Source: Penicillus capitatus (Eukaryota > Plantae > Chlorophyta). From it: 64,000 nucleotides of DNA. Of the stretch, positions 32,386-51,773 are shown in pieces (position 1 is the first letter of the stretch; every line of letters starts with the position of its first letter). Made by a program: the position numbers and the translations under genes. The notes under the pieces were generated by a model. It was not told where the DNA came from and searched no databases. It was given only the letters and a program-made list of their open reading frames with translations. The DNA is taken from contig OZ287698.1 of the NCBI GenBank assembly GCA_965649825.1, positions 1,594,668 through 1,658,667 of the forward strand. The letters run 5' to 3'.

Positions 32386-34615
32386 TCACGTTTCCTGTAA
32401 CATGATCATGGCTTCTTTGGGCTTCCCAAGCAACTTCAATGCTGTGCCAGCAATGTGTGAAGCTGTCAGTCCAGCGAGGGTCAGTTGATCTGAGTATGCC
32501 CCCTGTTCAATGAACTTGTCTGGCAATGTCATCGTGCGCACTCTCAGATCGCCATCAAGGAGGCCTTCCAATGCCAGGAAGGACAACACAACGGACCCAA
32601 AACCACCAATGGATCCTTCTTCAACGGTGATCAGGATTGGATGCTCCTGGGCAATTTGTTTAATCAAAACAGCATCCAGTGGCTTACAGAACCGAGCATC
32701 CATGACAGTGGCAGAGAATCCAGCTTCTGCCAACTTGTCTGCAGCGACGAGACATTCGTTAACGGATGATCCATATCCAATAAAGCAAATGTCTTTGCCG
32801 CTTCTGCGAATAACGCCTTTGCCAACGGACAATGGTGTTCCCTTGAGATCTGGTCCGATTCCTTCAGTTGCCAGATCCACTCCAATGCCGTTCCCTCTCG
32901 GATATCTCAAGCAGGAAGCACTGTAGTCGATCTGAGCTGCAGTGGCCACCATATTGATCAGTTCAGCCTCGTTAGAAGCGGCCATGACGACCATGTTAGG
33001 CAAGCAAGACATATAGGCAATGTCAAATGCTCCACAATGTGTTGCACCATCTGCTCCGACCAATCCAGCTCTGTCCATCATGAAACGCACTGGAAGCTTC
33101 TGAAGGCAGACATCGTGGATGACCTGATCGTACCCTCTTTGCAAGAAGGTTGAATAGATGGTACAGAAAGGCACCATTCCTTCACAGGCTAGACCAGCAG
33201 AGAATGTCACGGCGTGCTGCTCGGCGATGCCGACATCGAAGACGCGATCAGGGAATACTTTCTCATATCTGTAGAGGCCTGTTCCTCCAGCCATCGCTGC
33301 ATGCACAGCTATGACACGGCTGTCTCGGGTTGCTTCGGCAATCAAGGCATCAGCAAAATAATTTGTATATGACATGGTCTTTCCTTGCGATTTAAACTGC
33401 TTTCCAGTCTGGACGTCATACTTAACAACGCCATGCATCTTATCAGATGCCTTCTCGGCTGGCAAATACCCACGTCCCTTCTCTGTTACAATATGCAACA
33501 GCACTGGGCCGACAGTATCTGTTGCTTTGATTTCCTGAAGAACAGAAATGAGATCGTCAACACTGTGGCCATCCACAGGACCAATATAATACAGACCCAG
33601 CTCTTCGAAGAGCCTAGAACCAGATCCAGAGATCATTCCTCTCGCATAATCATCAAGCTTTGCTGTCGCCTCTTGAATGGACCCTGGCAATTGCTTCGTG
33701 ACGCCCTTTGCGATTTCACGGAGCTCTCTGAGTGGTCTGTTGGCCTGGATGCGTGCCAGAGCACTCGAGAGCCCGCCAACAGGAGGCTGATTCTTGCCAT
33801 TGTATTGCGTGGGTAGTGACACCTGCTGATTGTCATTGAGCACCACAAGCATATTGCTGTCTAAGAACCCTGCATGGTTCATGGCCTCATACGCCATACC
33901 ACCAGTAATGGCGCCATCTCCAATGACGGAGACAACATGATTCTTCCTTCCTCGGGCATCGCGACCGACAGCCATGCCCAGTCCGGCAGAGACAGATGTG
34001 GAACTGTGCCCGGCACCAAATGCATCAAAAGTACTCTCAGATCGATTTGTGAAGCCAGCAATGCCATCTGTCTGACGAATCTTACTCATCTGGGCGCGGC
34101 GTCCTGTCAGGATTTTGTGTGGGTAACACTGATGACCCACATCCCAGATGAATTTGTCTTCCGGACAGTTAAATACATAATGAAGGGCGACTGTTAACTC
34201 CACAACGCCCAGGTTTGCGCCCAAATGGCCACCTGTCTTGGAGACCGTGTGCACAATATCGGCTCGAAGTTCCTTGCACAGTTGTCTCAGCTGACCCAGC
34301 GTGAAGTTCTTCATATGAATTGGGTAGTTGACGGTGTCCAGAAGTGGCGTCGGCGGACCGTCGTCCGTCCAAGATCCAAGCTCGTCCATCGAGAGCTTAT
34401 CCCACTCGCCGTCCGAGTAGGTCGCCATCTTCTCGCTGATGGCGTTGTCGCTGGCATCGTTGTCCGCACGAACGAACACACGCGGATTGCGAGAGCCGAT
34501 GCGAGACGGCGCAGGGAAAGCGACGAGAGGACCCTACAGAGAACAGAGTGCACGAGATCATTCACTGTCGTTGGCACACCCACGCCGATGACTCGGGGTG
34601 AGTGGGTGTTACCAT
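32386..34615 (-). CDS. DXS: 1-deoxy-D-xylulose-5-phosphate synthase (plastid MEP pathway)
   Basis: 697-aa exon with [73 protein letters not shown] transit peptide comes from a short upstream exon (start at 34615 inferred; 34852 possible). Confidence 0.97.
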
Positions 34616-34944
34616 ACCTGTGCCAGTCGTCTTTGGTAAGGAGTTGTCGTCGCTCGGAGACTGAAAGACATGCTCTTCCTCTTTTTGCAAACAGCGGTCT
34701 CTCACAACTCTTCCCCGAAAGCCTGTAACACTCGTTGGTTCGTCTACCGCTGGAAAGACCAAGAATGACAAATGTTGAGAGGATTGCGTTGCATCAACTT
34801 CCTTGGCGATTAACGGTGCGGATTCGTTAGCGAGTTTGTGTGTAGAAGCCATTCAAGATCGAGAGAAGCGAGAGGCATAACAAGATATGTGTGTGTCTTC
34901 TCTTATCACAACTCAAAATGTACAGAAGTCGCGCTTCTGAGTTT

Positions 34945-35461
34945 TTACAGACTGAGACCAGAGTCTTCATTCTCTCCACCTCCAAGATCCTTCGCGGCGG
35001 TGGCATAGAATGCCCAGACGATTCCGAAAGAGATCAAGATTGCCCATCCCAAAATTGGGTCCGTGATGCCAAGGATGAGGCCTGTTCCTTCTGACTCCAT
35101 GGCTTTACCGACCTGTAGCAGACGTTCGTCCAGCCATATGCTGAACATCAGGAAGGATCTGCGGACCTTTGCCGTGGCCGGGGCTGCCACAAGGAGAACA
35201 GGCGCCGCTGCCACAAGAGCCGATGACATTTTGTCAATTGGTTTGGCTTCGCAGACAACGCGCGCTGAGAATATGACAGATAGGTTGCATTGAGACACCA
35301 TCATGCGTTACTTCGAGAAGCAGGTGTGACGACGGGCATCATTCCTGCAGAAAACGGCAAGCCTCAGTGAACATATTCGACGGATTTCCGAGGCCTTTAC
35401 GTGATCGCGTCAGTGGAACTGGAAGTCCTTTCAGAGTCGGCATCTTGGTCGTGCTCGCCAT
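34945..35461 (-). CDS. psbW: Photosystem II subunit W precursor
   Basis: Mature part MESEGTGLILGITDPILGWAILISFGIVWAFY..EDSGLSL; bipartite transit peptide split by three introns. Confidence 0.9.
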
Positions 35462-35595
35462 CTCGACGGAAAGACAGGAGAAAGAGAAGACGACCGAACG
35501 AACAGAGTGGAGGCGCAGAAGGGTCAGTCGCGGAGAACAGAGATCCACAGATCAGTGGATGTGACACATGACTGGACGGACGGACTCTCCTCAAC

Positions 35596-36930
35596 ATGCC
35601 GAGCGGATTGAAGCAGCCAGTTGGTCGTCCCACTCAATCTGTTGTGGGAGGCACTGATGTGAGCTTTAGGACAAAAACGATTAACAAACATTGCTGTCGT
35701 CCGACTGCGCAAGGCTGGTGCTGTTTTTGAGATTGCCTGTTACAAGAACAAAGTCAGCAATTGGAGAGCGGAAATGTAATGCAATCAATACCTGTGGAAA
35801 GCAGTCGGTGTTTATGCATAGCTGTGTGTGTTGGTGCAGTGAGACGGATCTCGATGAAGTCCTTCAAACCACAGCTGTATTCAGCAATGTCTCTAAGGGG
35901 ATAATGGCAAAGGAGAAGCAACTCCAAACAGCATTTAAAACAACAGATGAAGAGAAGATCTGCTTGGAGATTTTGGCAAAAGGAGAATTGCAGGTACCTG
36001 CCTCCGTAGGAATCGCATCCCTCTTTGAAACCTGCGGACTGCCATCAGGTGTCAGAAAAGGAACGAAAGCTGGAGTATGACAATCTCTACAAGGATGTCG
36101 CATCCATTATTGCCGAGAAATGCATCGATCCGAACACCAGTCGTCAGTATACGGCAACAATCATCGAACGCGCCTTGAAGGATGTCCATTTCAATCCAGA
36201 CCTGAAGAAGAGTGCAAAACAACAGGCATTCAGTGAGGCACTTCCACTGCTTCAGAAGAGGTTTAGCATCCAGAGAGCGAATATGCGAGTGCAACTTCAT
36301 TCCCCGATGACCCACGCAGGCTCGATAAAAGAATCCTTGCATGCTCAAGATTTCCTTCTGGAATCGTCGACTGTCGACAACGATTCCGCATCTGTGCAGT
36401 TTGTCTGTCTGATTGAACCCGGAATGTATCGACCTCTGCATCAACTCATCGAAAAAATCACACAAGGCACGGGTCGAATCGAACTGCTCAATCTGGCAGC
36501 CGTGAGCGATGTCTCATCGACGACGAGAACGCCTCAAGCACGAGAGTCATCTCCATCTTCAGAGTAACACACTGCTGTTGATCGACATTCGGATAGAGAT
36601 GCCTCACCTCTTGTTTGTAGCCCATTGGAGAGGGGAGAAGAAGTGATCGTGTCCGGCAGGATCTCTGGAAAGACGAGAGCAGCGAAACAAGAAAAAACAA
36701 ACACTGTCTATCAGAGAGGATCCATTGCAGCATTGCCCGAGGATTTTGCAAGGAAGAACATGTTTTTGGAGATCGATAAGTTGGAAGAGGGATGGCAGGT
36801 AGAACTGACGCAGTGCGATGGTTCTGATGTTATTCAGGCCACATTCTATTCTCCATCTGGCGAAGCAGTGGGAGCATATGCTAAAGCAAGAAGACAGGCT
36901 TTGGCCTCGGCGAGAACACAAGAAGGGTAG
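35596..36930 (+). CDS. SBDS: SBDS/Sdo1 ribosome maturation factor with an extra C-terminal domain
   Basis: Spliced N-terminus [33 protein letters not shown], and KSAKQQA. ORF 36625-36930 joins in frame through a short intron (36564-36596). Confidence 0.9.
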
Positions 36931-37227
36931 GACAGTCGGTAGCGTGAAAATGTCTACAAACCATTCACACACAGCCTTATCTGTAATAGTTCGTATCCAC
37001 GTCCGAAACAGTTACAAGGGACAACAACAATAACAAGGCATGAATGATCATTCATTGAATCTTCTCCCGAAAGAGATCCATACTCGCGAGAGGATTGTTG
37101 TGACGTTGCGAATTGCACTTGACAGCGATAGAATCCAAATCTATCTGCATCATCCCAAAAGCAACATAACAATTGATTTCGTGTCCACAAAGGAATTCGA
37201 AGCCGACAGTGTTTTCATTCCCGTCCG

Positions 37228-39183
37228 TTAGTTACTCTGTTTCTCCGTTTTTCTGTCCAGAATACCACCCATATCAAATTCAGGAGGCGCATAGTCAATA
37301 ATGCGCTGTGGATTGTTCTTGGTGCCGGATCCAGCGCCGGCAATAACGCGGAGCGATTCAACGGCCATCAATGAATTATGGACAGCCCAACAAACAGTAT
37401 CGATGACGGCTTCCAATCCCTTTGGTCGCTGTCGATCTGTCAACTCCGTCACATCCATAAGTCGCTCTGTGGCTGCTTCCCATGTCAACATCCGTTGTTC
37501 TTCAGCAGAGAGTGGTTCCGGTTCGGAAGAGAGTGCCTTTTCAATGCACTCTGTAAATTCCCGATCGGTCTTGTATATCAGGCAGTTACGGAACTTAGAG
37601 AAGAAATGGTTTGATGGGTGATCTGCACACACGACAAACTTCCCCATGGCAATTGCTTCGGCCGTCGTCGTGGCAACAACATCGCTCATGCTTGGATTCA
37701 CAAAGACCTTGTAGTCTTGGATGGAAGAATCTGCGTGATCTCTGGCTCCAAAGAATTTGACATCGAGATGGCGCCTTTGTGCTTCCTCTTTCACTGCAGG
37801 AAGGTCTGCTCCGTTGCCAAAGATGTCCACATGAATATTCTGACCCATACGCTCTCCATGCTTCGATAGTAGATCCACCAGTTCTGTGTAACCCTTGCCC
37901 CAGACAACCTTGCCAATAAAATAGAGGCCTTTGGTGAAGTCCGTGCGCGTTGGGTCTTTACTAGCAGATAGAGCACGTTGTTTTCCCACCTCCAGAAAAG
38001 TGGGAGACACGCCATGTACAAACATCGTGCGTTCGCGAGGGAGAGTCTGAACGGCATCGGACAGTTTCACCACATGATGGCAGTGTGCACGAGTAATGAT
38101 CTGATTGACTCGACGCAAAATCGTTTCCTTCACCTGCCCGTTATCTTCTCGTCGAGCATAGTCCAGATAGTTTGTATGCATGACGCCGACAACGTGATTG
38201 AATTTATCTGTCCAACGACGACCATGGTGGTACCAGGTCAAATGCTCTGGCTCTTCCAGAATGGCAATGTCTGCTTCGTGATCTGGCACATATTCCGTCA
38301 AATCTCCAACGGGCAGTATACTCCCCTTGTCTCTGGCATAGCGACCGGGATAGAAAGATACTCTGAAGAATCCAGTACACCCCGTTCGCCTTTCCGCCCA
38401 ATCCCTGATGTACGCTTCCTGTTCTTCCGGTGTGTCAAACGTGGCATCTCTGGGGAAGACCTTCTCCTGATCGGTCTTCGCCAACCATGGGACCAGGAGA
38501 GTGACCTTACGGCCTGAATCATCGCTGGATAGAAATGCTGCACGTAGAAGTGGATTGACAGATGTTCCAGTCATCCATGGTAGAGCCGCTGTGGTCACAA
38601 TCGTCACACGGCGATTCGGATCTCTGAGACTGCTCTTTCCGCGTATCTGTTGCTTTCCCATGGTCAGAAGTTCTTGCACATCTCGATTGGACTCATCATG
38701 GGCCCTCTGTGTTTTGACCAGGGCATCGCGGACCGACACCACTTCATCTCCATAAGCGTTTTTCTCCAGCAGACTTCCACGCACCTGCTGAATTTCATCC
38801 CATGGCAGACTCTGTTGGAGAATATCACCGAGTTGTGCGAAGTTTTGCTGGCACCTCTCTTGATACTTGCGTCCATTGGAACTCAGTCTCGCACTAAATG
38901 AGGCCAGAGTGCGTCGACAACTCACTGCCGTCTCTTCGAGTGTCTGTGATGTCGGAGGCATTTCTAGCAATTTGAGAGTGGTCAGACTGCGCAGGTTGTT
39001 CTTACAACAGGAAGCAGTTTCCTTCATCGCGGACTGACATCGAACGGCCGCCTGTTTCGATGTGCGCAGCAACATGTTGTTACTATCGTCCTTCGCGTTG
39101 GCATTGTGGTTAGTCGAACCGAATGTGAAACCCCAGAACGACGAGGCGCCATCTTGTTTCTTGTCCGCCTTTTTGACAACCAT
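37228..39183 (-). CDS. DGD1: Digalactosyldiacylglycerol synthase, DGD1-type, intronless
   Basis: RVTIVTTAALPWMTGTSVNPLLRAAFL, DIAILEEPEHLTWYHHG, VMHTNYLDY, YFIGKVVWGKGY, VATTTAEAIAMGK; ~180-aa N-terminal extension. Confidence 0.95.
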   Translation of the reverse strand: MVVKKADKKQDGASSFWGFTFGSTNHNANAKDDSNNMLLRTSKQAAVRCQSAMKETASCCKNNLRSLTTLKLLEMPPTSQTLEETAVSCRRTLASFSARLSSNGRKYQERCQQNFAQLGDILQQSLPWDEIQQVRGSLLEKNAYGDEVVSVRDALVKTQRAHDESNRDVQELLTMGKQQIRGKSSLRDPNRRVTIVTTAALPWMTGTSVNPLLRAAFLSSDDSGRKVTLLVPWLAKTDQEKVFPRDATFDTPEEQEAYIRDWAERRTGCTGFFRVSFYPGRYARDKGSILPVGDLTEYVPDHEADIAILEEPEHLTWYHHGRRWTDKFNHVVGVMHTNYLDYARREDNGQVKETILRRVNQIITRAHCHHVVKLSDAVQTLPRERTMFVHGVSPTFLEVGKQRALSASKDPTRTDFTKGLYFIGKVVWGKGYTELVDLLSKHGERMGQNIHVDIFGNGADLPAVKEEAQRRHLDVKFFGARDHADSSIQDYKVFVNPSMSDVVATTTAEAIAMGKFVVCADHPSNHFFSKFRNCLIYKTDREFTECIEKALSSEPEPLSAEEQRMLTWEAATERLMDVTELTDRQRPKGLEAVIDTVCWAVHNSLMAVESLRVIAGAGSGTKNNPQRIIDYAPPEFDMGGILDRKTEKQSN

Positions 39184-39692
39184 GAGTGCAGCGACGAGAT
39201 CGCCAGAGAGTATGTTCGTTCAATGTTCTGCATTCTCGATAACGACGTTTCAGTTGACGATGCATCCAAATGAAGTAAGTCTGCTTGCTGGTTGGACAAA
39301 TCAAGATACCGACAAACAGACAGACTAACAGGGAGAGAGCGTCATGAGGAGTGAGTTACCCAACCACGTGTGCATTTGACGGCGTCTTCTTTCCCCAGAT
39401 GGTGGTCTGCTCCGTGATGGCCGTTCTCTGTGTCTGCTGTAATCGATCAACATATGAATCTGGGCAGCATTAAATAGATGAGCAGCAGCAGGCCTCATTC
39501 CATTCAGCAATGATGAACTCCGTCCAGAACGAGAGAGATCATAGGGAAACATCATCGAAGTAACAGCACGAAGAGACGGGAAAGAAGCAATTCAACGATG
39601 TGCGTGCAACCCTAAGCGTTCTAATGGCGTACAATGTGCGTTGAGGACGATGGTACACAATAATCAATGAAAAGATAACAGAAAGCGCTGCT

Positions 39693-42600
39693 TCACCAAA
39701 TCTGATTCATCTGAAACGCAGCCAGCAAATCCAAAGCTTCTTTCCTTACCAAGACCCGAGAATCCCCGATGGCATCGCCGGCCGCCGAATTCGCCAAACG
39801 GTCTAATACACTCTCCACTTTGTAACGCTTTATGAACTCCTACAGCACACAGCATCGAATGGTCAAGGCAGACCACTCTCTATGGGAGAAGCGCTTGCTT
39901 TCGGTCTTGGATGCATTCCATAAATACGCCTGAGGGACTTGAGTAATCTGAGACATGTCGCCGCATCTGCCTCGAGTAGCATTTCCAGAATGACTTTGGC
40001 AAGCTCAGATTGTCCAGCTGTCCGACTCAATCTGTCCGACCGGATCAGCATCCGCAGCAGTGGATCCAGGACTGCTGATATTTCATTGCTGCTACGATAG
40101 CTGTACCCACGTAATATCGTAATCAAATGCTCTACGGAGGAGGGAGAGACCAACTTCTCTTCCACTTGGTGGATATCCTCCTCCAACCACGTTGCCAGTG
40201 CATCCAATACGACTTGATGCCAACTTTCTTCAGAAAGCAAGTCAAGGAAGAGATTCAAAACGTCATGTTCCCAGAATGTCTGTCGAGTGGCTGCCGAAGC
40301 ATGCATCAACAGACGACAGAGAAGCGGCACAGAATACTTCCGAGCATCATTTTCTTCATTTCTCGTTTCCTTGAGAGTCGTCCTTGAAGGCGATCGAGAA
40401 AGCATGCATAGGTAGGGAACGATGCCATAGCGAACTGCCTTTTCTCTCCACTGCGGATTGCATTTGCAGATAGTGTCAATCACAATCAGTGCCTCTGTCT
40501 GTATCTGGTTTGTCAGCGATGACCGTTCTCTCTGTCCCAGAAGGGGAACAAGATGCTCAACGGTCCCTGCTTCTTGTAAATGCACGACGACAGATGGCTT
40601 CTGACTGAGATGCTTGAGACAGACCACTGCCCTTCGAACAAGGTCCCTGGGCGGCAAGCGCAGCTGAAATACACACATCTCGATTGAACAGACTGCTCAG
40701 AGGCAGCTCGGCAGAAAGAAACGCACCAAGAGCAGAAACTGTCGGAGTGTTCTTGGACGGAGGAGGTGTCCGTGAACTTCACTTTCGCTCATAGATATTT
40801 TGAGAAGAAGATTCATGATCTTGTCTGAAAGAATCTGTACTCTCTCTAGCTGACTCTTCTGATTCGATCGCAGTGAATCTGATGCTTCTTGAGTATTGCT
40901 GGGAGCTGCCATTGACATCGATGTATCACTTGACTCACGAGGACATTCTGCACAACTCGACATTTCACTTGGTGTTCCAGGAACGCAGGGCTCCGAGATA
41001 CTGTCTGTGGACGAATAGGATTTTCTTGTCATGCTGACAGTCGTGGTTGGCATCGCTTCTGCTGGCGTTGCTGGAATGTCGTCCAATGGTGTGCGACGGC
41101 ACGTATGATGAACAGAAGAAAGACAAACAATGAGATGCCTACACAGATCTGCCATGCACAGCATCCGCATCAGTTTGCTTTCTAAGGATCGCTGGCTCTC
41201 CATGGCCCTTCCCAGACATGAGACAGCAATCTCCTTCAGTTCCAGACTCTTTCGTTCTCCGTCACCCAAAAGCATAACAAGATATTTGAGACCCTGACAT
41301 TGAATCAAGCTGTCTCTCGACTGTACGCTTGCAAAAGCCATCGATTGAAGGAAGCGTGCCGCCTCGAGGCGTACAGTGAGAGGGAAAACTGTAGCTGCGA
41401 ATTTGAAGATTTCTCCTGCTAACCCAACCTGAGCGGCATCTCTCAACAACAACGAATCGTCGCCGCAGACACAATTGGATAAAGAAAGGGTGAGCTCAAC
41501 GACCACCAGATCATCGAACTGAAGCAATAACTCCAGAAGGGTCAGAAGACCATCCGAATGAACAAAGAACGATCTGGCCTCGACATCATGTCGAATCAAG
41601 TTGACAAGATCGCGGAGAGCCGGAAGAATGGATGTTAGAGGGAGATGGGGATGTAGGGATAAGAGCACTTTACGGATATTGCTCGGATCGTATTGTTCAC
41701 AGCAGTTGGTCATCTAAACATTCCACGTCTGTCAGCTGTCAGTGCGATATTATATGTGATCCCACCTGCGTTGTGTGGTAGGCATCCCAGTTCTGGTCCA
41801 TCTGACTTCTGCAGATACCATTTTCAAAGTCTGTAGAACAGATGATGTGTTGCTGCTTTCTTGAGAATGTGGAGAGAGAACGAACCATAGACACGATCTC
41901 TGAAAATGGTGACAAGGATGCTCTTTTCATTCGAGACAGGCTGCGGACTCGGTGTCTGAGCCTCGGGACTCACTGTACCGGAAGCTACTGACAGAGACTG
42001 AACACATGCATGTGCATTAATCATGAGTCGTCGTTGTTATGTCGGTTCGCACCATTGTGTCTTTGTCCGTTGCTTCTTCTCTCCAGGCTTTCTTCCTTCC
42101 AATCACAGTGGATGTATCCGATCGCGCGGATTCATTTCGACTCTGTCCTCGTTCCTTCTCCGGTGATGATTGACTGGACTGAAAAAACAGAGAGCATTGC
42201 TGCTGCATGGGCACATGGCATACAGAACAGTACCGGTGGAAGTGCGACAAATACTTTCCTTTGGCTGTCTGTTGATAACCGCCTGCGAAGTCTCACATAA
42301 TTATCTTCTTCGACATCTGTAGCATCCATTGGATGGCCTTCATTAATGGCTGCGCTAGAAGAGCGACTGAGCGCTAGTGGAGAATCTGTCCTCTCTGGAG
42401 ACGTTGCCTGAGATTCAACAAAACAGAATGCAGTGAGTGAATGAGATCAGCGTGTGATGATGGGCTTACAGGTTCTATTTCTGATGTATGGTCACTAGAC
42501 GGCTTTGAAGTGCGTGTGCTCGCTTTGTGTTGAAAGATACGCGCAACAACAGATCGACCATGGTGAGGAATAGTTGAAGGCGAAGGAGCTGACAGTGATG

Positions 42601-43737
42601 ATGGAATGGGATTCAGTTTATTGGGAGAGACACTACGGTCTTGATTTTCAGATATCCATTCATGCTTCAGAAGATCGGTAGCAGATGGCCTTTTCATGGG
42701 GTCCTGCAGCAGCAGCAGCAGATATGGAACATCTAAGGGTGTTTGGCTAGTACCTTTATAAAACAAGAGAGAAGAAAAGAACGAAGAGAATCTGAGATTC
42801 CTTGAGGTAGCGGTGGGTGTTTATCTTGAACAATTCGAAAAAGAGCAGAAAGAGGCTGACAATCAAAATACGGTGCTGAACCAGTGAGTAATTCCACAAT
42901 GAGGCATCCGATACTCCAAATATCGGCAGCTGTGGTAACACTGGACAACTCAATCACCTGACAGCACCATTCTGACATGGAGAGATGGTAGGGAACCGTG
43001 TGAGCACACCTCTGGAGCCATCCAATAAGGGGATCCAGCAACAGTCTTATCAGTTTCCTCCTCTGTCCCCTTACTCCCCCTATCAGCTAATTTGGCGGCC
43101 ACCCCAAAATCAGCTAGTTTGATGACCATCTGCATGCAGTCACATCAGAAAAAACTAGACAGACGTGTCTTGGACGGAAGGATGGCCATACATCTTTAGT
43201 GGTTAATATGTTCGCTCCTTTTATGTCTCTATGCACGACTCCTTGGTCATGCAAATACTCTAATCCACTCAGCACTTGAGCAACATAAAGTGCGACCCAT
43301 CTCTCAGAGAATGCTCCGTAATTCGTTTGTTTGATGACACCAGCTAAGGAACCACTCTCCATGAACTCCAGAATTATGTACAAATGATTATTTGTCTTTA
43401 TGGAATCGTAGTATTGAACGATATTCTCATGATCTAAATTCTTGAGAAGGTCGATTTCGCCTACGACTCCATTGAGCTGTTCCTTCGAAACGCCAGTGAG
43501 TGGTATCTGCTTCACTGCCACAAAACGACCTTCTTGCTGGTCGAAAGCCTTAAAAACGCGACCATTGGCTCCACGTCCCAGCTCAGCACCAATGGTGTAG
43601 CGACCCGCCAGAATAGACTGCCCTCCACGAGGAACGTCGCTAAACGGCGAAGACGATGTTGGAGTTGGTGGTCCGCGAGGGATCGGCGAGGAACGATGTG
43701 AACTGCTTGCGCCTTCAGGACGTCCTCCATTCGACAT
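39693..43737 (-). CDS. MAP3K epsilon / Cdc15-like Ser/Thr kinase with ARM-repeat C-terminus
   Basis: [60 protein letters not shown]; helical-repeat C-terminus ending [23 protein letters not shown]. Confidence 0.92.
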
Positions 43738-45268
43738 TGTTTCTGTGGTGGGACGATAAACAATACGCGAACGCGAAGAATCGAAACCCACTCACTCGTC
43801 CTGCAACTTATTGTGTGCAGGAACGCTTTCTTGCGACGATGGCGTGCTTCGAAAAGATGCAAAATGAGATGGTGGTGGTGGCGAAGACCGAACGTCTTTC
43901 AACACGCCGTTCGTTTGTTCGTTTCCATTATGCGTGTCGGGATTAACCGCACAAGTGTTGGTCGGCTGTCGCAACTGCGTCTCCGTCCAATCGCTGCTGG
44001 AAACGAAAGACAGTTGCCACCCTCTGGGACTGTCGGAGAGGACCGGTATCCTTTAACAGTCAGAAAGGGAGACATGCGTCGTCGGTGATGCGCCATGCGT
44101 GTTTAGGTTTAAAGATTTGAAAGTTCCAGGGACATATTGGTGGAAAGAGGCCAACACGAAGGGATCCGAACTCGCAGTGACATTCGACACAGGCGAAGGC
44201 GAGATTGTACTCTTAGTTGCCATTCGGCCGAACGCGCATTATTGAAATGGATTCAGGAGGTGCGGGCTCTCTCCGGTGATAATGTACTAAGAACAGCTGA
44301 GGGATGTGGTGCCATGAAGCCGAATGTGTAAGCTGTTTAGGATGGAAACAATGTCCACTTTATGTGTTTTGTGCATGCTTAGCGATTTCTGCTTGGAAGG
44401 CACGTGTGAGCTGTGTCTTGTGGAGGGTAAAGGTTTGCAAGAAACATCCTGGAAGGCAGACCCAACAGGCAAGCGATCATGCATCCAACTACAATGAAAC
44501 CGAAGGCAATCTTCTGAACACAGGAAAAGGCGTTGTCCGATCGTGTCTGACGCCATTTCCTGCAGGATGCGCAAAGATGATGGTCAAAGTGCTCAGTGAT
44601 GAAGAGATATGGAACGAAGGCGTCGTCTAATCAACGACATGACAATCTACGTACTCAGCGATGAGGAATGAGGAATGAGACAGTTGTCTAAACAGTGAGA
44701 TGACCATGACTTCTTCAAGAGCATGCACTGCTTTACACATCCATGTTGATACAGTTTTGTAAATCCTCTTGGCAAAAATCGGTTGTCCCATTTGAATGGA
44801 GAACTTGTTGACGTGGATTCGGTCAGTCTTCGATACGTTTGATAAGATTAAACCCGCATAAATTCCATGCATGTCGTGTCACGTTTGTCACGCGGGAGAC
44901 ACCGCGCTAAGAGAACAAATAGCGGACGACTTCAAACGTTCTCACAGCAAGGTGTCTACAAGTTCGCATCTACGGATTTATATGCCAGCTGTGACTAGAC
45001 AGGTAAGTTCATCAGCCTCTCGGTACCATAAAAAAGGGACTTTGAGTTGACGTGAACACCACATGAGCACCCCTTGGGAAACAGGACACTTGGAAAACTA
45101 GGTAGGCGATGTGACAGCGACACGAGAGCGTAACAACGTTACGAAGAGAAGTCGCCCACAATGACAATAATTAATTTATCTTCGCATCTCGCTGCCGCCA
45201 CCGCGTTTCCGTTGTTGATCGATACAGATTGCGATTAACGTTTCGAGCAGCAGTAACTACACACCGCG

Positions 45269-45496
45269 ATGTTGGCTGACAAATTACTCGACGCGATGGA
45301 CAATCCTAGCGAGGTGCACGCAAACCCCAAGCTGAGGCGTTGCATTTCGACAATCGACACGGAGAAGGTACAAATATATGGCGTACAAAAGATGCGATGT
45401 GTGTTTACAGGAAAGGTGTTCTCTTTCATTTTCTTGGACGTTGAAAAAGGGCAGATGCGATGTGCTGCTTTAAGGCAGCGCGACATCTTCGACTAG
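45269..45496 (+). CDS. Small hypothetical protein (75 aa)
   Basis: ATG-initiated ORF with protein-like composition; no recognised motif. Confidence 0.3.
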   Translation: MLADKLLDAMDNPSEVHANPKLRRCISTIDTEKVQIYGVQKMRCVFTGKVFSFIFLDVEKGQMRCAALRQRDIFD

Positions 45497-45568
45497 ACCA
45501 AAGAACACACTAGACAAACCAGAGACGGTGTGGATGCAGCGCTTTTATAGGACGGGCCGTGCAGGGCA

Positions 45569-45599
45569 CTACGGCGCGTCGACCGACCACGCGCCGTAG
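45569..45599. other. Perfect GC-rich hairpin (11-bp stem, 9-nt loop)
   Basis: ctacggcgcgt-cgaccgacc-acgcgccgtag, about 35 bp from the foldback palindrome. Confidence 0.9.
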
Positions 45600-45633
45600 C
45601 ATAGTCATCGAGTGTTGATCCGGTCGATTAAGG

Positions 45634-46204
45634 GGGTAAAATCACTATAACCCGGCCCTCGACGCCAAAGTAAGGGGGTAAGTTCATTGTAACCCGTCCT
45701 CAGACCTCAAGTCAGTGGGTAAGTTCACTGTAACCCGTCCTCAGACCTCAAGTCAGTGGGTAAGTTCACTGTAACCCGGCCCTCGGCCTCAAGATTTGGG
45801 GGAAGTCATGTGTGAAACAAACATGTTGGGGCACCTGAACTTGAAGGTGTTCTCAACTTCGGGCCGCATCAGTCGGCTTCCACGTCCATACTTCACCCCA
45901 ACGTTAAGCAACTGGTGTACGACTATCAAGTCATCTTCACGCATTTCGACGAGTGAACAAGAATGACGGACCGCGTTCTCATGAACATGCCCACCTTCGA
46001 GTTCAGGCACCGCAACATGTTTGTTTCACACATGACTTCCCCCAAATTTTGAGGCCGAGGGCCGGGTTACAGTGAACTTACCCACTGACTTGAGGTCTGA
46101 GGCCGGGTTACAGTGAACTTACCCACTGACTTGAGGTCTGAGGCCGGGTTACAGTGAACTCACCCCATTATTTTGGCGTCGAGGGCCGGATTACGCGAGC
46201 CTAC
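45634..46204. mobile_element. Foldback-like element: ~202-bp inverted arms (45648-45849 / 45992-46193) made of 41-bp tandem units around a 142-bp spacer
   Basis: Units gggtaagttcactgtaacccg(t/g)cctcagacctcaagtcagt start at 45676, 45717 and 45758, with a degenerate copy at 45634; mirrored on the right arm. The inverted repeat is directly visible; mobility is an inference (no TSD or transposase seen). Confidence 0.7.
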
Positions 46205-46434
46205 ATGCCGATTTCGATGAAGTCACCCGAAAAACAGGACACCGGTTGCTCGTTGCGGCGATGGTCGCATAACCATTGAAATGGATTATATTGATTATAT
46301 TTTTTTGTCAATAATTTTTTTAAACAAATCAGGATTTTAACACCCGCCCTAAACTAAAAAAGGCCGAGTGTTAAAGAAATACCAATAGGTAATGTTGCTC
46401 CAATACCAAGCCAAATCGATATGAGCTAGATGCC

Positions 46435-46910
46435 ATGAAGTTCTACGACAGACTCCACATCGGCAGCAACTACATAACTTTAAACGCGGACATCACTCGA
46501 ATCCGAGACACGGTAGTTAACATCTCATACTTTTCTCGCTCATTCGTGGATTTCTGTTCAACTGTTGAAAGGCTTCGAGACGGACTTTGAGATACGACCG
46601 AACATCTCCTCGACCGTGGATTTTGTGCCCGGCGAGGCAGCTGAAATCAGCGCCCTTCGCGTCTTCCATATGGTATGATAATCTCACTCTTTTGGCTGCC
46701 GAAAGTGGCGTAACGTGTTGTGTAGTTCAAGACGATCGAATCGATTCGTCACATGGACAGTGGAAAGCCGTCGATGCGATTGACATCGTTAAAAATGTCG
46801 AAAGCAATCAACGCATTAGGAAGCGAGACGGCGTTGAAGTGGTGATTAAACGCATCACGATCAAAGACAATTCCGATTGCTCTATCGAAGTGCACTTCGC
46901 TCTTCTGTAA
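46435..46910 (+). CDS. Hypothetical two-exon protein, possibly a degenerate gene
   Basis: ATG at 46435, GT-AG intron 46513-46571 joins in frame to ORF 46587-46910; no recognisable domain; further coding-like fragments to ~47500 are out of frame. Confidence 0.3.
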
Positions 46911-47818
46911 GCATTCACATACAGTCTTCGGTCTAGATCACATTGTGGGACCATATATGGCTGTTAACAAAGGAAACGAGATTGAAACTGTAATGAGCGA
47001 TGGCAACAACAAAGAAGTCTGCCGATTGAGTCTATCGTACATAACATCGACAACAATAGGTGATGATTTCCCTGTCATCTCACGCGAACCAGCGGCATCT
47101 TACCCCTCAAAAGGTCCGCTTACGATGTAGACATTCAACGCTACACGAAGCGCAAGCAACAGCTTCACTCGAACGACAACCCGGACCCTCGAACTGGGCC
47201 GACGACGTTCCGACGCAATTCCACACGAACTCTTTGACATACGCGAACCCTAACGATCCGATCTCCGTCTTTCTGCAAAGACTACAAGGAGCAGTATGCA
47301 CAGACAGCTACAGGCCGTGTCCATGTGCAGCATCAATTTGATCTACCACACTCGTGACGACACCAGATATCTTCTTCATTTAGCGCAAAGGAAAACGATT
47401 GGACCTTTTAGTGAACTTACACGCTGGAGAATTTCAGGCGTCTATCTTGCCAGTCGAAATGGAAGCATGCGATCTGGAGGCATTGGTACCTAAGCTCTGT
47501 AACTTCAATTTGTGATGTTGCCAATGTTTGTTTTGGGATTAACGGATCACGAAGCATATGTATCGAAATGACATCTCGTCGAGCCAGTACTTATGCTCTT
47601 CTCACCTGATTGCATAGAGACTCTTCAAGCTAGGGTACTGTTTCAGTCGATTCATGTAAGAATTGGTTCCGCTAGCAGTGCACCGAATCGACCTGTATGG
47701 AGAACAAGGAATAACGAAGAAAGGAACCTGTGAGTAAGAATCCCTCCTCTGTCTTGGTTGGATGACTGATTTAAATAGAAGGCGGTTTTTTAATCCTTCT
47801 AATCTTTCGTTCTTTCTC

Positions 47819-49431
47819 TCAGTTACGAATGATCTGTTCGTCAAAAACCCAGTTCAATCCACTCATGATCTCAAATGGTACTCCGCCTATATTTCCAAAC
47901 TTCACCTTATGATATCCCAAGAACACTGTCATCGCTTCGAAGAAACCAGAGATGCCTCCAAAGTTTGCCTTAAGTTTCCCATCGAACATCAAAGTCATGA
48001 CAGACTCAAATGTATGCTCCATCCACTTTTTATGCCTCAGAATAAATGCATGACCACCCGAGTAACGATCCGATGGTACGTCCAAGAGAAAAGCAGAGTA
48101 GGCGGAATGCGCTAAACGATCAACTGTCATGAATAGCAAAGGACCATTCCTGGCTCTGGGAATATTCGCATGGAAGAGCTGCAAATTCCACCCTGGTGCT
48201 TTGAGATAGATGCACATGAGAAACATCAAAATGGTGCTGTCAGAAGGAATATGTCGTCCGGTTTCTCGAGTATAGCTCCTTGTCGTCTGATGTCCCTCAA
48301 AGTCCGCCAACACCAGATCTTGCAACAACTGCTCCAGTCGACTGCAAACAAATCCATGAGGACATCCATCAGGAATCAGATTCTGGATCCACGTTCCAGA
48401 GAAGAGCCATATCATGTAAGCCATCGTCGACAATGCCTTCAGACAGTGTCACATCAGACAAACGATGGAAGAAAGAAGAGTCAGTCAGACATTCATGTAC
48501 TCCCTCTTCCTTTCCGGATTATCGGTCGCAGCAGAGGCTAGCTGTTCTTCCAAGATCTGACGTCTTCTCTGAATCCACTGACTCTGTCTTTGCGCCTGTT
48601 CGTTCGTCAGTTGCACTGTCAATGGGAACAGTGGGGCATTCGACTCATGGAATGCATCTGCATACGATTTGGCGGTCTGGAAAGCATTTCTTGCCTGCTC
48701 GAGTGCGCGCGTCACGACATGGACACGGAACCATTGTCGGAAACGGCGCACACATGCCTATGAAATAGTCTATGCTTTGGCTCTAAGACAGGCGACCATG
48801 TTTACTTCGTAAGTAGAGCCATCCAGGTGGATTTCTCGTAGGAGAGGCAACAAGTACGTCAAAGGCGTCACGGTCAGATCATTCGCGTCGAGTTCTCCGA
48901 TAACATCCGTTGTCGTTCGCTGCAGCCATTCAGGGTGACCATCATGGTCTGAGAATTGGCTTCCCTTACCAACGACACTTCACAGACGACTGTTTGACCA
49001 AGAACTTGAAACATCGTCCAAGACGGGATTGTTGGCAACTGGAAAGATGGGACGCGTGCGATTTGACGATGCCATGCAATGCAGATGAATAAATCGACGT
49101 TAACCTTCATAATGCACGGATAAAGAATGCAATTGGACGCGAACGACGACTCCGAGTAAGCTGTTTTCTCGATTCGCAAACCGATCATGAGTCGGTTGAT
49201 GGAAACGTCTATTAACCTTTCTGAAGCTATGACGCTGAGGTGGACACATCTCGAGGAGGATAACTGCGTTATGGCTCTCTCTTTTAAAGAATCTTGGTGA
49301 CAAGGCTCTTTCGATCTTTGCAAGAAGGCGTAAAGGATATCAACAGTTCTCTTCTCTAACGTGCGGAGGCGTGTTGCCTGTAAGCTCTTCCAGTTTTTGT
49401 CTTGACTCCTTCTGCAGTCTGCAATCTGCAA
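47819..49431 (-). CDS. Diverged TMEM209-like (CytochromB561_N family) nuclear-envelope protein; 5' end unresolved
   Basis: VRRFRQWF resembles the RLRQWF motif; IPSDSTILMFLMCIYL resembles LPTDSAIIMHVFCTYL; C-terminal FEAMTVFL..GNIGGVPFEIMSGLNWVFDE resembles [29 protein letters not shown]. In-frame introns 48437-48490 and 48758-48805. Confidence 0.6.
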
Positions 49432-50411
49432 TCGTCACATTCGTATTCTTCCCGTATTCCAGCGCATGGATTCGAGTAAGCAAGAAAAGTCTTGACACGC
49501 GGCGTAGAGCTGTGAATGAAGCTTACGGGCCTTAGAAGATTGAAGAACTCCCTCGTTTGTTCGAGCTGTCGCCTTCCCAACTAAGTCAAGGAAATGTTGT
49601 CACAATGGAGCAAATGCATTTATTACCAACAATCGAAATAAGGATCATCAATAACTCGGGGTTGCACTTGTGTTTGTGCCCGCCTCATCGCCGATGAAAT
49701 ATCGAGGAGACCTTTACTGTCAAAAAAAGGAAAACATGTCGTCTGCACTTAAGATATTAGCTTGAATCAACAAAGGACATTTGTCAAGTGACCATCTAGC
49801 TTCATTTGGACACGGAATTACAGAAAGCTGGTGCTTGTAATCTAGAATTTTAAAGATCATCGGGAGTATCACTACAGAACAAAAAAGACCTGATTGCTCA
49901 TAGTCACAGAGGACGTCCGACGGATTTCGACATAGCGTGCATCGAAGAAGTCTCTTTTTGCATGTGCACTGAACAGCATTTTGATAGTGACCAATGCTAT
50001 CAAGGCGTGCTCGCATATGAAGCATCGCGTCGTTGACTCTAAATCTCCAAAGAGGCCAAAACTGCAATGCATTTGGAGACTCTTTCTATAACGCAACGTT
50101 CATGGTAGTTGTATCAGATCAGGTGATCAATTGCTTCGATGAAGCGTGTGCAAAGTGTTTTGTAACTGTGGACATCATCTATAATCAACACCTTCCAAAG
50201 CTCTCAAGATCGTTGTGTGTATTGTGAATGACAGACAGTCACAATCAAAACAGAATGATGAATTTAGACGTCTGCGATGGATAAGATGTCTGTCAGCATA
50301 GAATTTCGCTACGTCGACATTCGAGCTTTTAGTTCTTCGATCAACAGAGCGTTAAAACGTCTTTTGTGAAAAATACCACAGAGAGAGAGTTTCCTTTTGT
50401 AATCTTCGGCA

Positions 50412-51773
50412 ATGCCACAGTCGACGGAAGTGTCGACGCCGCCGAACGGTTTTCTTGAAATACCGCCGACAGCACCGCAAATCGTTTGCTTTTCGGATGA
50501 GGATAAGGAAAAGCACGTACTGAAGTTTCCGCAATCGCCGGTAAAAGGCCAAGGCGTCGTTATCTTTTCCAACGAACAGCGTGAACGTTTTAAAGTCTCT
50601 CTCAGTGCTACGGAGGATTTCAAAGATGGGATTTTTCTTGACGTTGTGAAGAAATGCGACGCCGACGAGACGCGCCTCGTAATCAAAAACGGAATGGAGC
50701 CTGATAAAACATTCACATTCAAGAACGTTTTCATTGACGATGAAGCAAGGGCTTCGTACTGGATCAGCTTCTCTAGCGAAGAAAAAGAATTTAAGTACGG
50801 TGTTGGAGAAGCACGAGAGGACCTGGTTCTGTTGTGTTGTAAATGCATGTGCGTGAATGATATGCCACCTGACTTGACATTTGTTAAGTTATCGGAAGAT
50901 CTGAAGCTGGAATGCTTTCAGCGCGATCCAGTTGTCATTGATCCTCCACTCGCCGTCATTCCAGTGGACGAATTCACTATGGAAAATGCAGCAAAGAGTT
51001 CGTTTGCAGTTCCAGCAAATCTAACCAGCATTTGTCAAAAACTGTATGGAAACATTTCTGGCGGATCATTCAAGCTCAACACAGATGATTTCCCGTGCTT
51101 CACTGATGCCATTGAAGCGAGCATTAGGAATAAGGATGGCTGGTGTTACAGAACGCTGAAGAGCAAGGCAGGGGAGTTTCCTGGAGGCGAGTTAAAGACT
51201 TACCTAAGAATCACTCTTGGTGTTAATCAAGGAGAATCCCCTGGGATTCCTTACGTCATGGAAATATGGCCACCGGGTCACTCTTCGCCAATCCATAGGC
51301 ATGCTGAAGCAAATGCTATCATTAGAGTGCTGCATGGACAAATTCATGTGTGTCTGTACAAGATGCTGTCAATACACCACGACAAACCATTCCAGGAGGC
51401 CGATTTCAGAGAAGGCGATGTTACGTGGATCTCACCAACGCTCAATCAAACGCATATGCTGGAGAATAGATGCTGTGAAACGTGTATCACGATTCAGTGT
51501 TACATGTATGCAGCGCAGGATAATCAGCATTACGAGTACTTTGATTATTTGGTGGACAAAAAGAAAGGCGAAATCAAGCACTTCTATCCACATAGCGATT
51601 GCGACTTCTTAGTTTTTAAGGAAAAAATGAAGGAGGAGTATTGCTGGAAAACACCAAAGATGATCGATAGTGCAGATAAGAGTCGAAACAGTAATAGTTG
51701 GATATCAAAGACATTGAAGAATTTTTGCGAGAGATTTGGTGCGTGGATCGGTGTCGGTAAAGAGAGAGTTTGA
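50412..51773 (+). CDS. Two-domain cysteine/thiol dioxygenase-like cupin protein (453 aa, intronless)
   Basis: Cupin 3-His motifs WPPGHSSPIHRH and EGDVTWISPTLNQTHMLEN, followed by TIQCY; N-terminal beta-rich domain with SYWISFSSEEKEFKYGVGEARE. Confidence 0.8.
   Translation: MPQSTEVSTPPNGFLEIPPTAPQIVCFSDEDKEKHVLKFPQSPVKGQGVVIFSNEQRERFKVSLSATEDFKDGIFLDVVKKCDADETRLVIKNGMEPDKTFTFKNVFIDDEARASYWISFSSEEKEFKYGVGEAREDLVLLCCKCMCVNDMPPDLTFVKLSEDLKLECFQRDPVVIDPPLAVIPVDEFTMENAAKSSFAVPANLTSICQKLYGNISGGSFKLNTDDFPCFTDAIEASIRNKDGWCYRTLKSKAGEFPGGELKTYLRITLGVNQGESPGIPYVMEIWPPGHSSPIHRHAEANAIIRVLHGQIHVCLYKMLSIHHDKPFQEADFREGDVTWISPTLNQTHMLENRCCETCITIQCYMYAAQDNQHYEYFDYLVDKKKGEIKHFYPHSDCDFLVFKEKMKEEYCWKTPKMIDSADKSRNSNSWISKTLKNFCERFGAWIGVGKERV

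Follow-up and report, generated by a model that had tools for sequence, protein, structure and literature searches.

A palindrome of 41-bp units at a synteny breakpoint in a green algal nuclear genome, possibly a relic with foldback-type architecture

Genomic setting

The window, as the whole analysed stretch of 64,000 nucleotides is called here, is nuclear DNA of a chlorophyte green alga; among its spliced genes are those encoding a dynein heavy chain, a plastid-type DXP synthase, Arm-repeat proteins and a MAP3K-type kinase. For the DXP synthase, identity is 78-79% with the enzymes of Ostreobium and Bryopsis and about 75% with those of chlorophycean algae, and the introns are very short, about 30-50 nt. 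At 808-1113 of the window, a tandem array with a 51-bp period (about six units) lies upstream of a 902-aa ORF with a Bact_surface_Ig-like domain.

The window was compared with sequences at increasing distance. An ENA metagenome contig of the same species (ERZ25074695, ctg340422_42x_l; 635 kb, 42x; locus label L004) provides a second haplotype. A sister lineage, about 10% diverged from the window, is represented by contigs L128 and L129 of ENA sample ERZ26696514, to which we were led by members of that sample that share a 90% protein cluster with the neighbouring kinase; these are two haplotype contigs, 99.6% identical to each other. A more distant relative, L002, has a kinase 73% identical to that of the window.

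The palindrome lies in a block that sits between convergent genes, since the 3' ends of both neighbours face it. The features of the locus are as follows.

44105-44629, plus strand: left neighbour, a small spliced gene with exons conserved in L002 and L128 (tblastx), its TAA at 44627-44629 and its 3' end facing the block
44638-47513, no strand: lineage-specific block of 2,876 bp that contains the palindrome and is absent from L128 and L129 (blastn)
44651-44702, plus strand: diverged tandem copy, with a 64-bp period, of the 3'-terminal ~50 nt of the small gene, lying at the block's left edge
45569-45599, no strand: perfect hairpin (11-bp GC-rich stem, loop of 9 nt; DNA fold z = -3.4), separated from the left end of the palindrome by 35 bp
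45634-45675 (A), 45676-45716 (B), 45717-45757 (C) and 45758-45798 (D), plus strand: tandem units of the left arm, each a 20-nt core GGGT-N12-ACCC with a 21-nt tail
45799-45849, plus strand: left inner arm, without subrepeats, its first ~31 nt identical in 4 of the 4 arms of both alleles
45850-45991, no strand: spacer, 142 bp, non-palindromic, with CTTCA at 45891-45895 as an empty target site
45992-46042, minus strand: right inner arm, mirroring 45799-45849
46043-46207, minus strand: tandem units D', C', B' and A' of the right arm, the outermost core (A') degenerate
46250-46400, no strand: AT-rich stretch of ~150 bp with 30-33% G+C, ~50 bp right of the palindrome, with a 4-bp haplotype indel
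46587-46910, plus strand: 107-aa ORF with a sub-threshold likeness to the RPA1 OB-fold, not called as a gene
47602-50096, minus strand: right neighbour, a multi-exon gene with a weak CytochromB561_N match, its 3' end facing the block
47602-47844, 47819-48433, 48485-48751, 48874-49431 and 49872-50096, minus strand: ORFs of the right neighbour

Structure of the palindrome

A repeat search places the inverted arms at 45648-45849 and 45992-46193, each of 202 nt, 94% complementary and 142 nt apart, in agreement with an earlier note on this DNA that had described arms of about 202 bp around a 142-bp spacer. The palindrome measures about 570-574 bp in all, and each arm consists of four 41/42-bp units followed by about 50 nt of inner arm that is free of subrepeats. 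TRF reports 3.9 tandem copies of a 41-bp unit at 45634-45793 and 2.6 copies at 46060-46165. The core GGGTAAGTTCACTGTAACCC occurs seven times at ≤3 mismatches, always within the palindrome, where 0.01 occurrences are expected; the eighth core, of the outermost right unit, is too degenerate to be found at this threshold, and the earlier description of three good units and one degenerate unit per arm thus holds.

Folded as single-stranded DNA, the palindrome reaches -257.7 kcal/mol, compared with -82 for shuffles (z = -33). It is a real structure, well beyond chance. The same note had called the core GGGT-N12-ACCC quasi-palindromic; the 4-bp GGGT/ACCC stem is there, but it is the whole of the symmetry, and a unit alone folds no better than its shuffles (z = -0.55). 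The spacer is unstructured, with fold z-scores near 0 (-0.3 and +0.9).

The arms differ at 12 positions per 202 nt, four of them transversions, and none of these mismatches is compensated. At the outermost 14 positions (45634-45647 against 46207-46194) complementarity is almost wholly absent. Beyond the arms, the inverted alignment of flank to flank scores 23, compared with 21.9 ± 2.3 for shuffles, so that the borders are discrete. A larger, eroded palindrome was therefore rejected, as the flanks show no inverted similarity above that of shuffles.

Two alleles, arm-specific units and a nested insertion

The window and the ENA contig show no differences over 23-44.8 kb and 50-55 kb, diverge by 0.5-1% in 44.8-49.5 kb and by 1.3-2.4% in 55-61.8 kb. 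This alternation of identical and diverged blocks indicates that the ENA contig is the other haplotype of the same species. The mosaic of window 22386-61774 against L001 and L004 suggests either recombination between haplotypes or phase switching in an assembly.

The ENA allele has three units per arm where the window has four, each arm being shorter by exactly one 41-bp unit. Across the rest of the palindrome the alleles differ by three SNPs, one of them in the left arm and the other two in the right; the spacer has none. This density equals that of the flanks (0.5-1%). The haplotypes are about 0.7% apart, compared with 6% divergence between the arms.

The units carry a record of the arm in which they lie. 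The left arm has T at 45697 and 45738, and the partner positions 46144 and 46103 are C on the plus strand, i.e. G in the mirror, just as had been read from the letters before. In the 3+3 allele each arm has a single middle unit, of T-type in the left arm and of G-type in the right, and in the 4+4 allele of the window there are two middle units of the arm's own type in each arm. These one-of-each and two-of-each states support the earlier proposal that the divergence of the arms came first and the duplication of units within each of them followed, and they indicate that the T/G difference between the arms predates the change in unit number. Since both alleles keep the arm-specific type, each arm has gained or lost a unit by copying or losing a neighbouring unit of its own; conversion from arm to arm is disfavoured, because it would have carried the variant of the other arm across.

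In addition, the spacer of the ENA allele contains an insert of 1,437 bp (L004 4086-5522) flanked on both sides by CTTCA, a 5-bp target duplication, whose empty site is the single CTTCA at 45891-45895 of the window. Its terminal direct repeats (L004 4086-4241 and 5367-5522) are 156 nt long, 99% identical and bounded by TG..CA. Long direct repeats, TG..CA ends, a target duplication in the range of 4-6 bp and an empty site are all features of LTR-type elements. The five longest ORFs of the insert match no Pfam family at E ≤ 1 and contain no reverse transcriptase or integrase domain, and no second copy was found among the loci compared. Judged by these features, the insert is a small LTR-type element, non-autonomous at best and polymorphic within the species. 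It is the insert, not the palindrome, that resembles terminal-repeat retrotransposons in miniature and other small non-autonomous LTR elements, with which it shares direct terminal repeats, TG..CA ends and the 5-bp duplication; it differs from small non-autonomous LTR elements in that no domain of a reverse transcriptase or integrase was detected in it and no further copy among the loci compared.

A block missing from the sister lineage

The sister contigs match the window from 33147 to 44637 at 90.4% identity and then directly from 47514 to 49078 at 85%. The junction is clean and the whole block, 44638-47513, is missing from both contigs, leaving the stop codons of the two convergent genes about 100 bp apart. 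With alternative limits, 44703-47516, the block has GATG on each side where the sister lineage has one GATG, a junction that could have arisen by insertion with a 4-bp duplication as well as by deletion at microhomology. It may be that the sister lineage lost the block, and the palindrome itself need not be the part that moved. The more distant relative has a different gene downstream of the small gene and so gives no usable outgroup with which to polarise the indel; the CCDC113-like exons that follow the small gene in L002 were considered and are not in the window, being simply those of a different neighbouring gene.

Within the block, about 1 kb of unique sequence at the left is followed by the palindrome, the AT-rich stretch and the 107-aa ORF. 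No homologs of the block were found elsewhere in the window or in L002, L003 or L128. In the tandem duplicate at 44651-44702, the first 17 nt are closer to the gene of the sister lineage than the functional copy in the window is. The hairpin at 45569-45599 is one of just three perfect hairpins of at least 11 bp in the 64 kb. The 107-aa ORF matches Pfam REPA_OB_2 (E = 4.5e-4) and TIGR00617 rpa1 (E = 1.2e-3), both below cut-off, and has no relative in PDB and none among viruses, with no match in IMG/VR; two of its three haplotype SNPs fall at first or second codon positions, and it may be a gene fragment. The ORF and the hairpin had suggested a Helitron, which was rejected: TC...CTRR ends are absent on either strand and the hairpin is not at the block border.

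To the right of 49078 the sister contigs share no homology with the window. There they carry ORFs with RVT_1 (reverse transcriptase) and an MnmE gene (L128 1-7600, L129 1-7500). The neighbourhood takes insertions readily, as seen from the 1,437-bp insert in the other haplotype and the RVT_1 ORFs nearby in the sister lineage. The palindrome had been placed at the start of an accessory region; this is roughly right, with synteny to the sister lineage ending at 44637, about 1 kb to the left of the palindrome. At 50412-51773 (plus strand) the window carries an intronless 453-aa ORF of the cysteine dioxygenase/cupin family that has no close ortholog, stands alone in its own 90% cluster and is absent from the corresponding place in the sister contigs. 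Its best relatives are bacterial (Bacteroidia, cyanobacteria and others; 44-52% identity), and it looks like a horizontally acquired accessory gene. Across 49-58 kb the window has a lower G+C (0.43-0.46) and mostly orphan ORFs. A 75-aa ORF adjoining the palindrome was matched solely on the same ENA contig, and a 347-aa ORF on the right side differs between the alleles.

Searches for copies, genes and RNA signals

The search for copies at the DNA level covered about 147 kb, made up of the 64-kb window, the sister lineage (41 kb) and the more distant relative (41 kb). Beyond the palindrome itself, no copy of it or of its core was found in the window, L128, L129, L002 or L003. The 20-mer of the core has no match in IMG/VR or in JGI metagenomes, and its single isolated match in GTDB genomes is at chance level; a scan of a phage collection found nothing. 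A looser pattern, GGGT-N12-ACCCG occurring twice, returned more than 120 matches in JGI and three in IMG/VR, all rejected as unrelated palindromic repeats of bacterial type. The closest of them (L077 group) agrees at 25 of 41 positions, and its repeats are arranged differently, neither in tandem nor inverted as here.

The window as a whole yielded no transposase, and no HUH or Rep ORF was found. Likewise, the ORFs of the block and its surroundings (42-60 kb) contain no Rep, HUH, polymerase, capsid or integrase domain. Rfam gave no match at E ≤ 1 over 44-48 kb, where there is also no tRNA. A 73-aa ORF across the centre (45789-46010, minus strand) was rejected as a gene, having no Pfam match and not being called as a gene; among 1.84 billion proteins it has one marginal match (E = 4e-4). 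Each core carries an inward-facing TGTAA. A role of this pentamer as a poly(A) or terminator signal was also rejected, since a sense TGTAA at the typical distance after the stop was seen in 0 of 10 confident genes and the pentamer is not enriched.

Possible origins of the palindrome

The palindrome may be a dead, decayed and immobile relic built like a non-autonomous DNA transposon of the foldback type, a tentative reading that we hold at somewhat less than an even chance. We infer both a transposon origin and a binding-site role for the units. The arms would be arrays of 41-bp subrepeats, putative protein-binding sites about four helical turns apart, on either side of a short unique centre, and the 2.9-kb non-coding block between convergent 3' ends would be a place where, in a compact genome, insertions cause little damage. 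Unit number shifts by replication slippage inside each arm, and in one haplotype the spacer has received an LTR-type insertion. Whether transposon relic or local duplication (below), the palindrome at present behaves like neutral DNA, its arms having drifted 6% apart and its outer ends having eroded; this is seen in the uncompensated arm mismatches, the flank-like SNP density, the eroded ends, the slippage of units, the tolerated insertion and the sister lineage that lacks the block.

The earlier note had already proposed a foldback element, and the architecture bears this out in part: the 202-nt arms of four 41/42-bp units are long inverted repeats built of tandem subrepeats, with a short unique centre, but there is neither a target duplication nor conservation of the termini, and no transposase and, in the sequence searched, no second copy was found. 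At the arm ends, the flanks ...GGTCGATTAAGG and GCCGATTTCGATG... share just CGATT, at an offset, and show no target-site duplication. The 9-bp pair TCGATTAAG and TCGATGAAG at the borders, mismatched at one position in the window and at two in the other allele, was considered as a target duplication and is treated as chance, not being adjacent to matching termini. Conserved matching terminal nucleotides are absent, the outermost 14 nt of the arms being mismatched. As in MITEs, the size (about 574 bp) is below ~800 bp, there is no coding capacity and the ends are inverted; presence or absence of the element alone is not observed, since both haplotypes carry the palindrome and the sister lineage lacks the whole 2.9-kb block. 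The mobile-element reading is unproven.

Among known systems, the closest in layout are the Foldback, Galileo and Tetris elements of Drosophila, which share with the palindrome long subrepeat arms and, in their non-autonomous copies, a short unique middle (PMC3573991, PMC3688188, PMC4079207). In Galileo the tandem repeats in the TIRs expand and contract and serve as secondary transposase-binding sites (PMC3573991, PMC3688188), and the repeat numbers of the two TIRs vary independently of each other and are often unequal (PMC3573991). In contrast to Galileo, both alleles of the palindrome are symmetrical; there is no sequence similarity to Foldback, Galileo or Tetris, and the host is a green alga. 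In addition, the Drosophila foldback families are multi-copy, with conserved termini, transposase-coding relatives and, in Galileo, 7-bp target duplications, none of which is seen here. Tm1 Mutator/Foldback elements and MULE-derived MITEs (PMC3169594) share arms of about 200 bp and a total below 1 kb, but no MULE transposase was found here.

Alternatively, a 41-bp minisatellite together with its neighbouring 50 nt may have been copied in inverted orientation by template switching or fold-back repair, never having moved and having no function. Taken by itself this is rather unlikely, yet it is nearly as likely as the transposon relic, and the two are indistinguishable from one locus. It agrees with the single copy in all sequence searched, with the missing target duplication and terminal conservation at the arms, and with a region rich in small duplications and indels, including the 64-bp tandem duplicate at 44651-44702; arms 6% diverged in haplotypes about 0.7% apart are also old relative to polymorphism and simply drifting. 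However, the MITE-like size and the subrepeat architecture are typical of foldback elements, and nearby there is no uninverted second copy from which the spacer and inner arms could have been derived.

It is improbable that the symmetry is under selection, either as a very young lineage-specific small-RNA hairpin locus or as a cruciform or protein-binding boundary between the convergent genes. The number of units per arm is equal in both alleles (4+4 and 3+3) in spite of the arm-own T and G types; because each arm kept its own variant, this took two separate 41-bp indels in the same direction on one haplotype, the pattern expected of a compensatory whole-unit change. The fold is also very stable in silico and the 41-bp period is near four helical turns. 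But this is a single such event, and given two events the neutral chance of such a pairing is about 1 in 8 to 1 in 4. Furthermore, the sister lineage does without the entire block, its convergent genes lying about 100 bp apart; the SNP density is as in the flanks; none of the 12 arm mismatches (4 transversions) is compensated; and a 1.44-kb insertion in the loop is tolerated. Rfam has no match, the spacer z is near 0 and TGTAA is not a 3'-end signal here. Precursors of miRNA and siRNA in Chlamydomonas are often long near-perfect hairpins. Like the long-hairpin small-RNA loci of green algae and plants, the palindrome is young, restricted to one lineage and almost perfectly paired over 200 bp, but it has neither conservation nor a recognisable target.

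Less probable still is an origin of replication, or a terminal junction, left over from an integrated plasmid or virus, in which iteron-like repeats would adjoin AT-rich DNA; this had been put forward earlier, and the results do not support it. Its attraction lies in the 20-nt cores repeated at a fixed period, the 150-bp stretch of 30-33% G+C that lies 50 bp to the right of the palindrome (46250-46400), so that repeated sites do lie beside an AT-rich region, and the weak RPA-type OB-fold likeness 400 bp to the right. Yet no cognate initiator and no replicon or viral gene adjoins them among the ORFs of 42-60 kb, with Rep, HUH, polymerase, capsid and integrase domains all missing from the block and its surroundings; IMG/VR has no match for the core or the OB-like ORF, whose score is below both curated cut-offs; the centre is non-palindromic, unlike that of a hairpin-telomere junction; and the whole block is missing from the sister lineage. 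Iterons are usually about 20 bp long, direct and beside their own Rep gene. The palindrome shares with iteron-type origins the repeated cores at a fixed helical phase and the adjoining AT-rich DNA, and differs in its 41-bp mirror arrays, the lack of a Rep gene and its nuclear intergenic site that is missing in the sister lineage.

An assembly artefact, i.e. a chimeric foldback read or a mis-join, has a negligible probability: palindromes are a known artefact of long reads and the window and the ENA contig differ exactly at the palindrome, but a foldback read does not give 6% arm divergence around a unique spacer, and the second allele in an independent 42x contig, with the same structure in the same place and differing by whole-unit indels and an insertion with a target duplication, shows that the palindrome is not the assembly chimera against which the earlier note had advised a check.

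Concluding remarks

The palindrome is a real, lineage-specific structure in fast-turnover intergenic DNA at a synteny breakpoint, shaped like a foldback element but with no sign of function or mobility. Its two alleles, together with the empty site in the sister lineage, illustrate neatly and on a small scale how such a palindrome evolves, by whole-unit slippage in each arm, erosion of the outer ends and nested insertion of a retroelement. The wider region to the right of 44.6 kb, a synteny breakpoint that holds lineage-specific genes, among them the bacterial-type gene of the cysteine dioxygenase family, may be more interesting than the palindrome itself. If the palindrome is a transposon relic, it would mark an undescribed foldback-like family in an uncultured chlorophyte lineage and would show that compact genomes tolerate insertions between convergent 3' ends.
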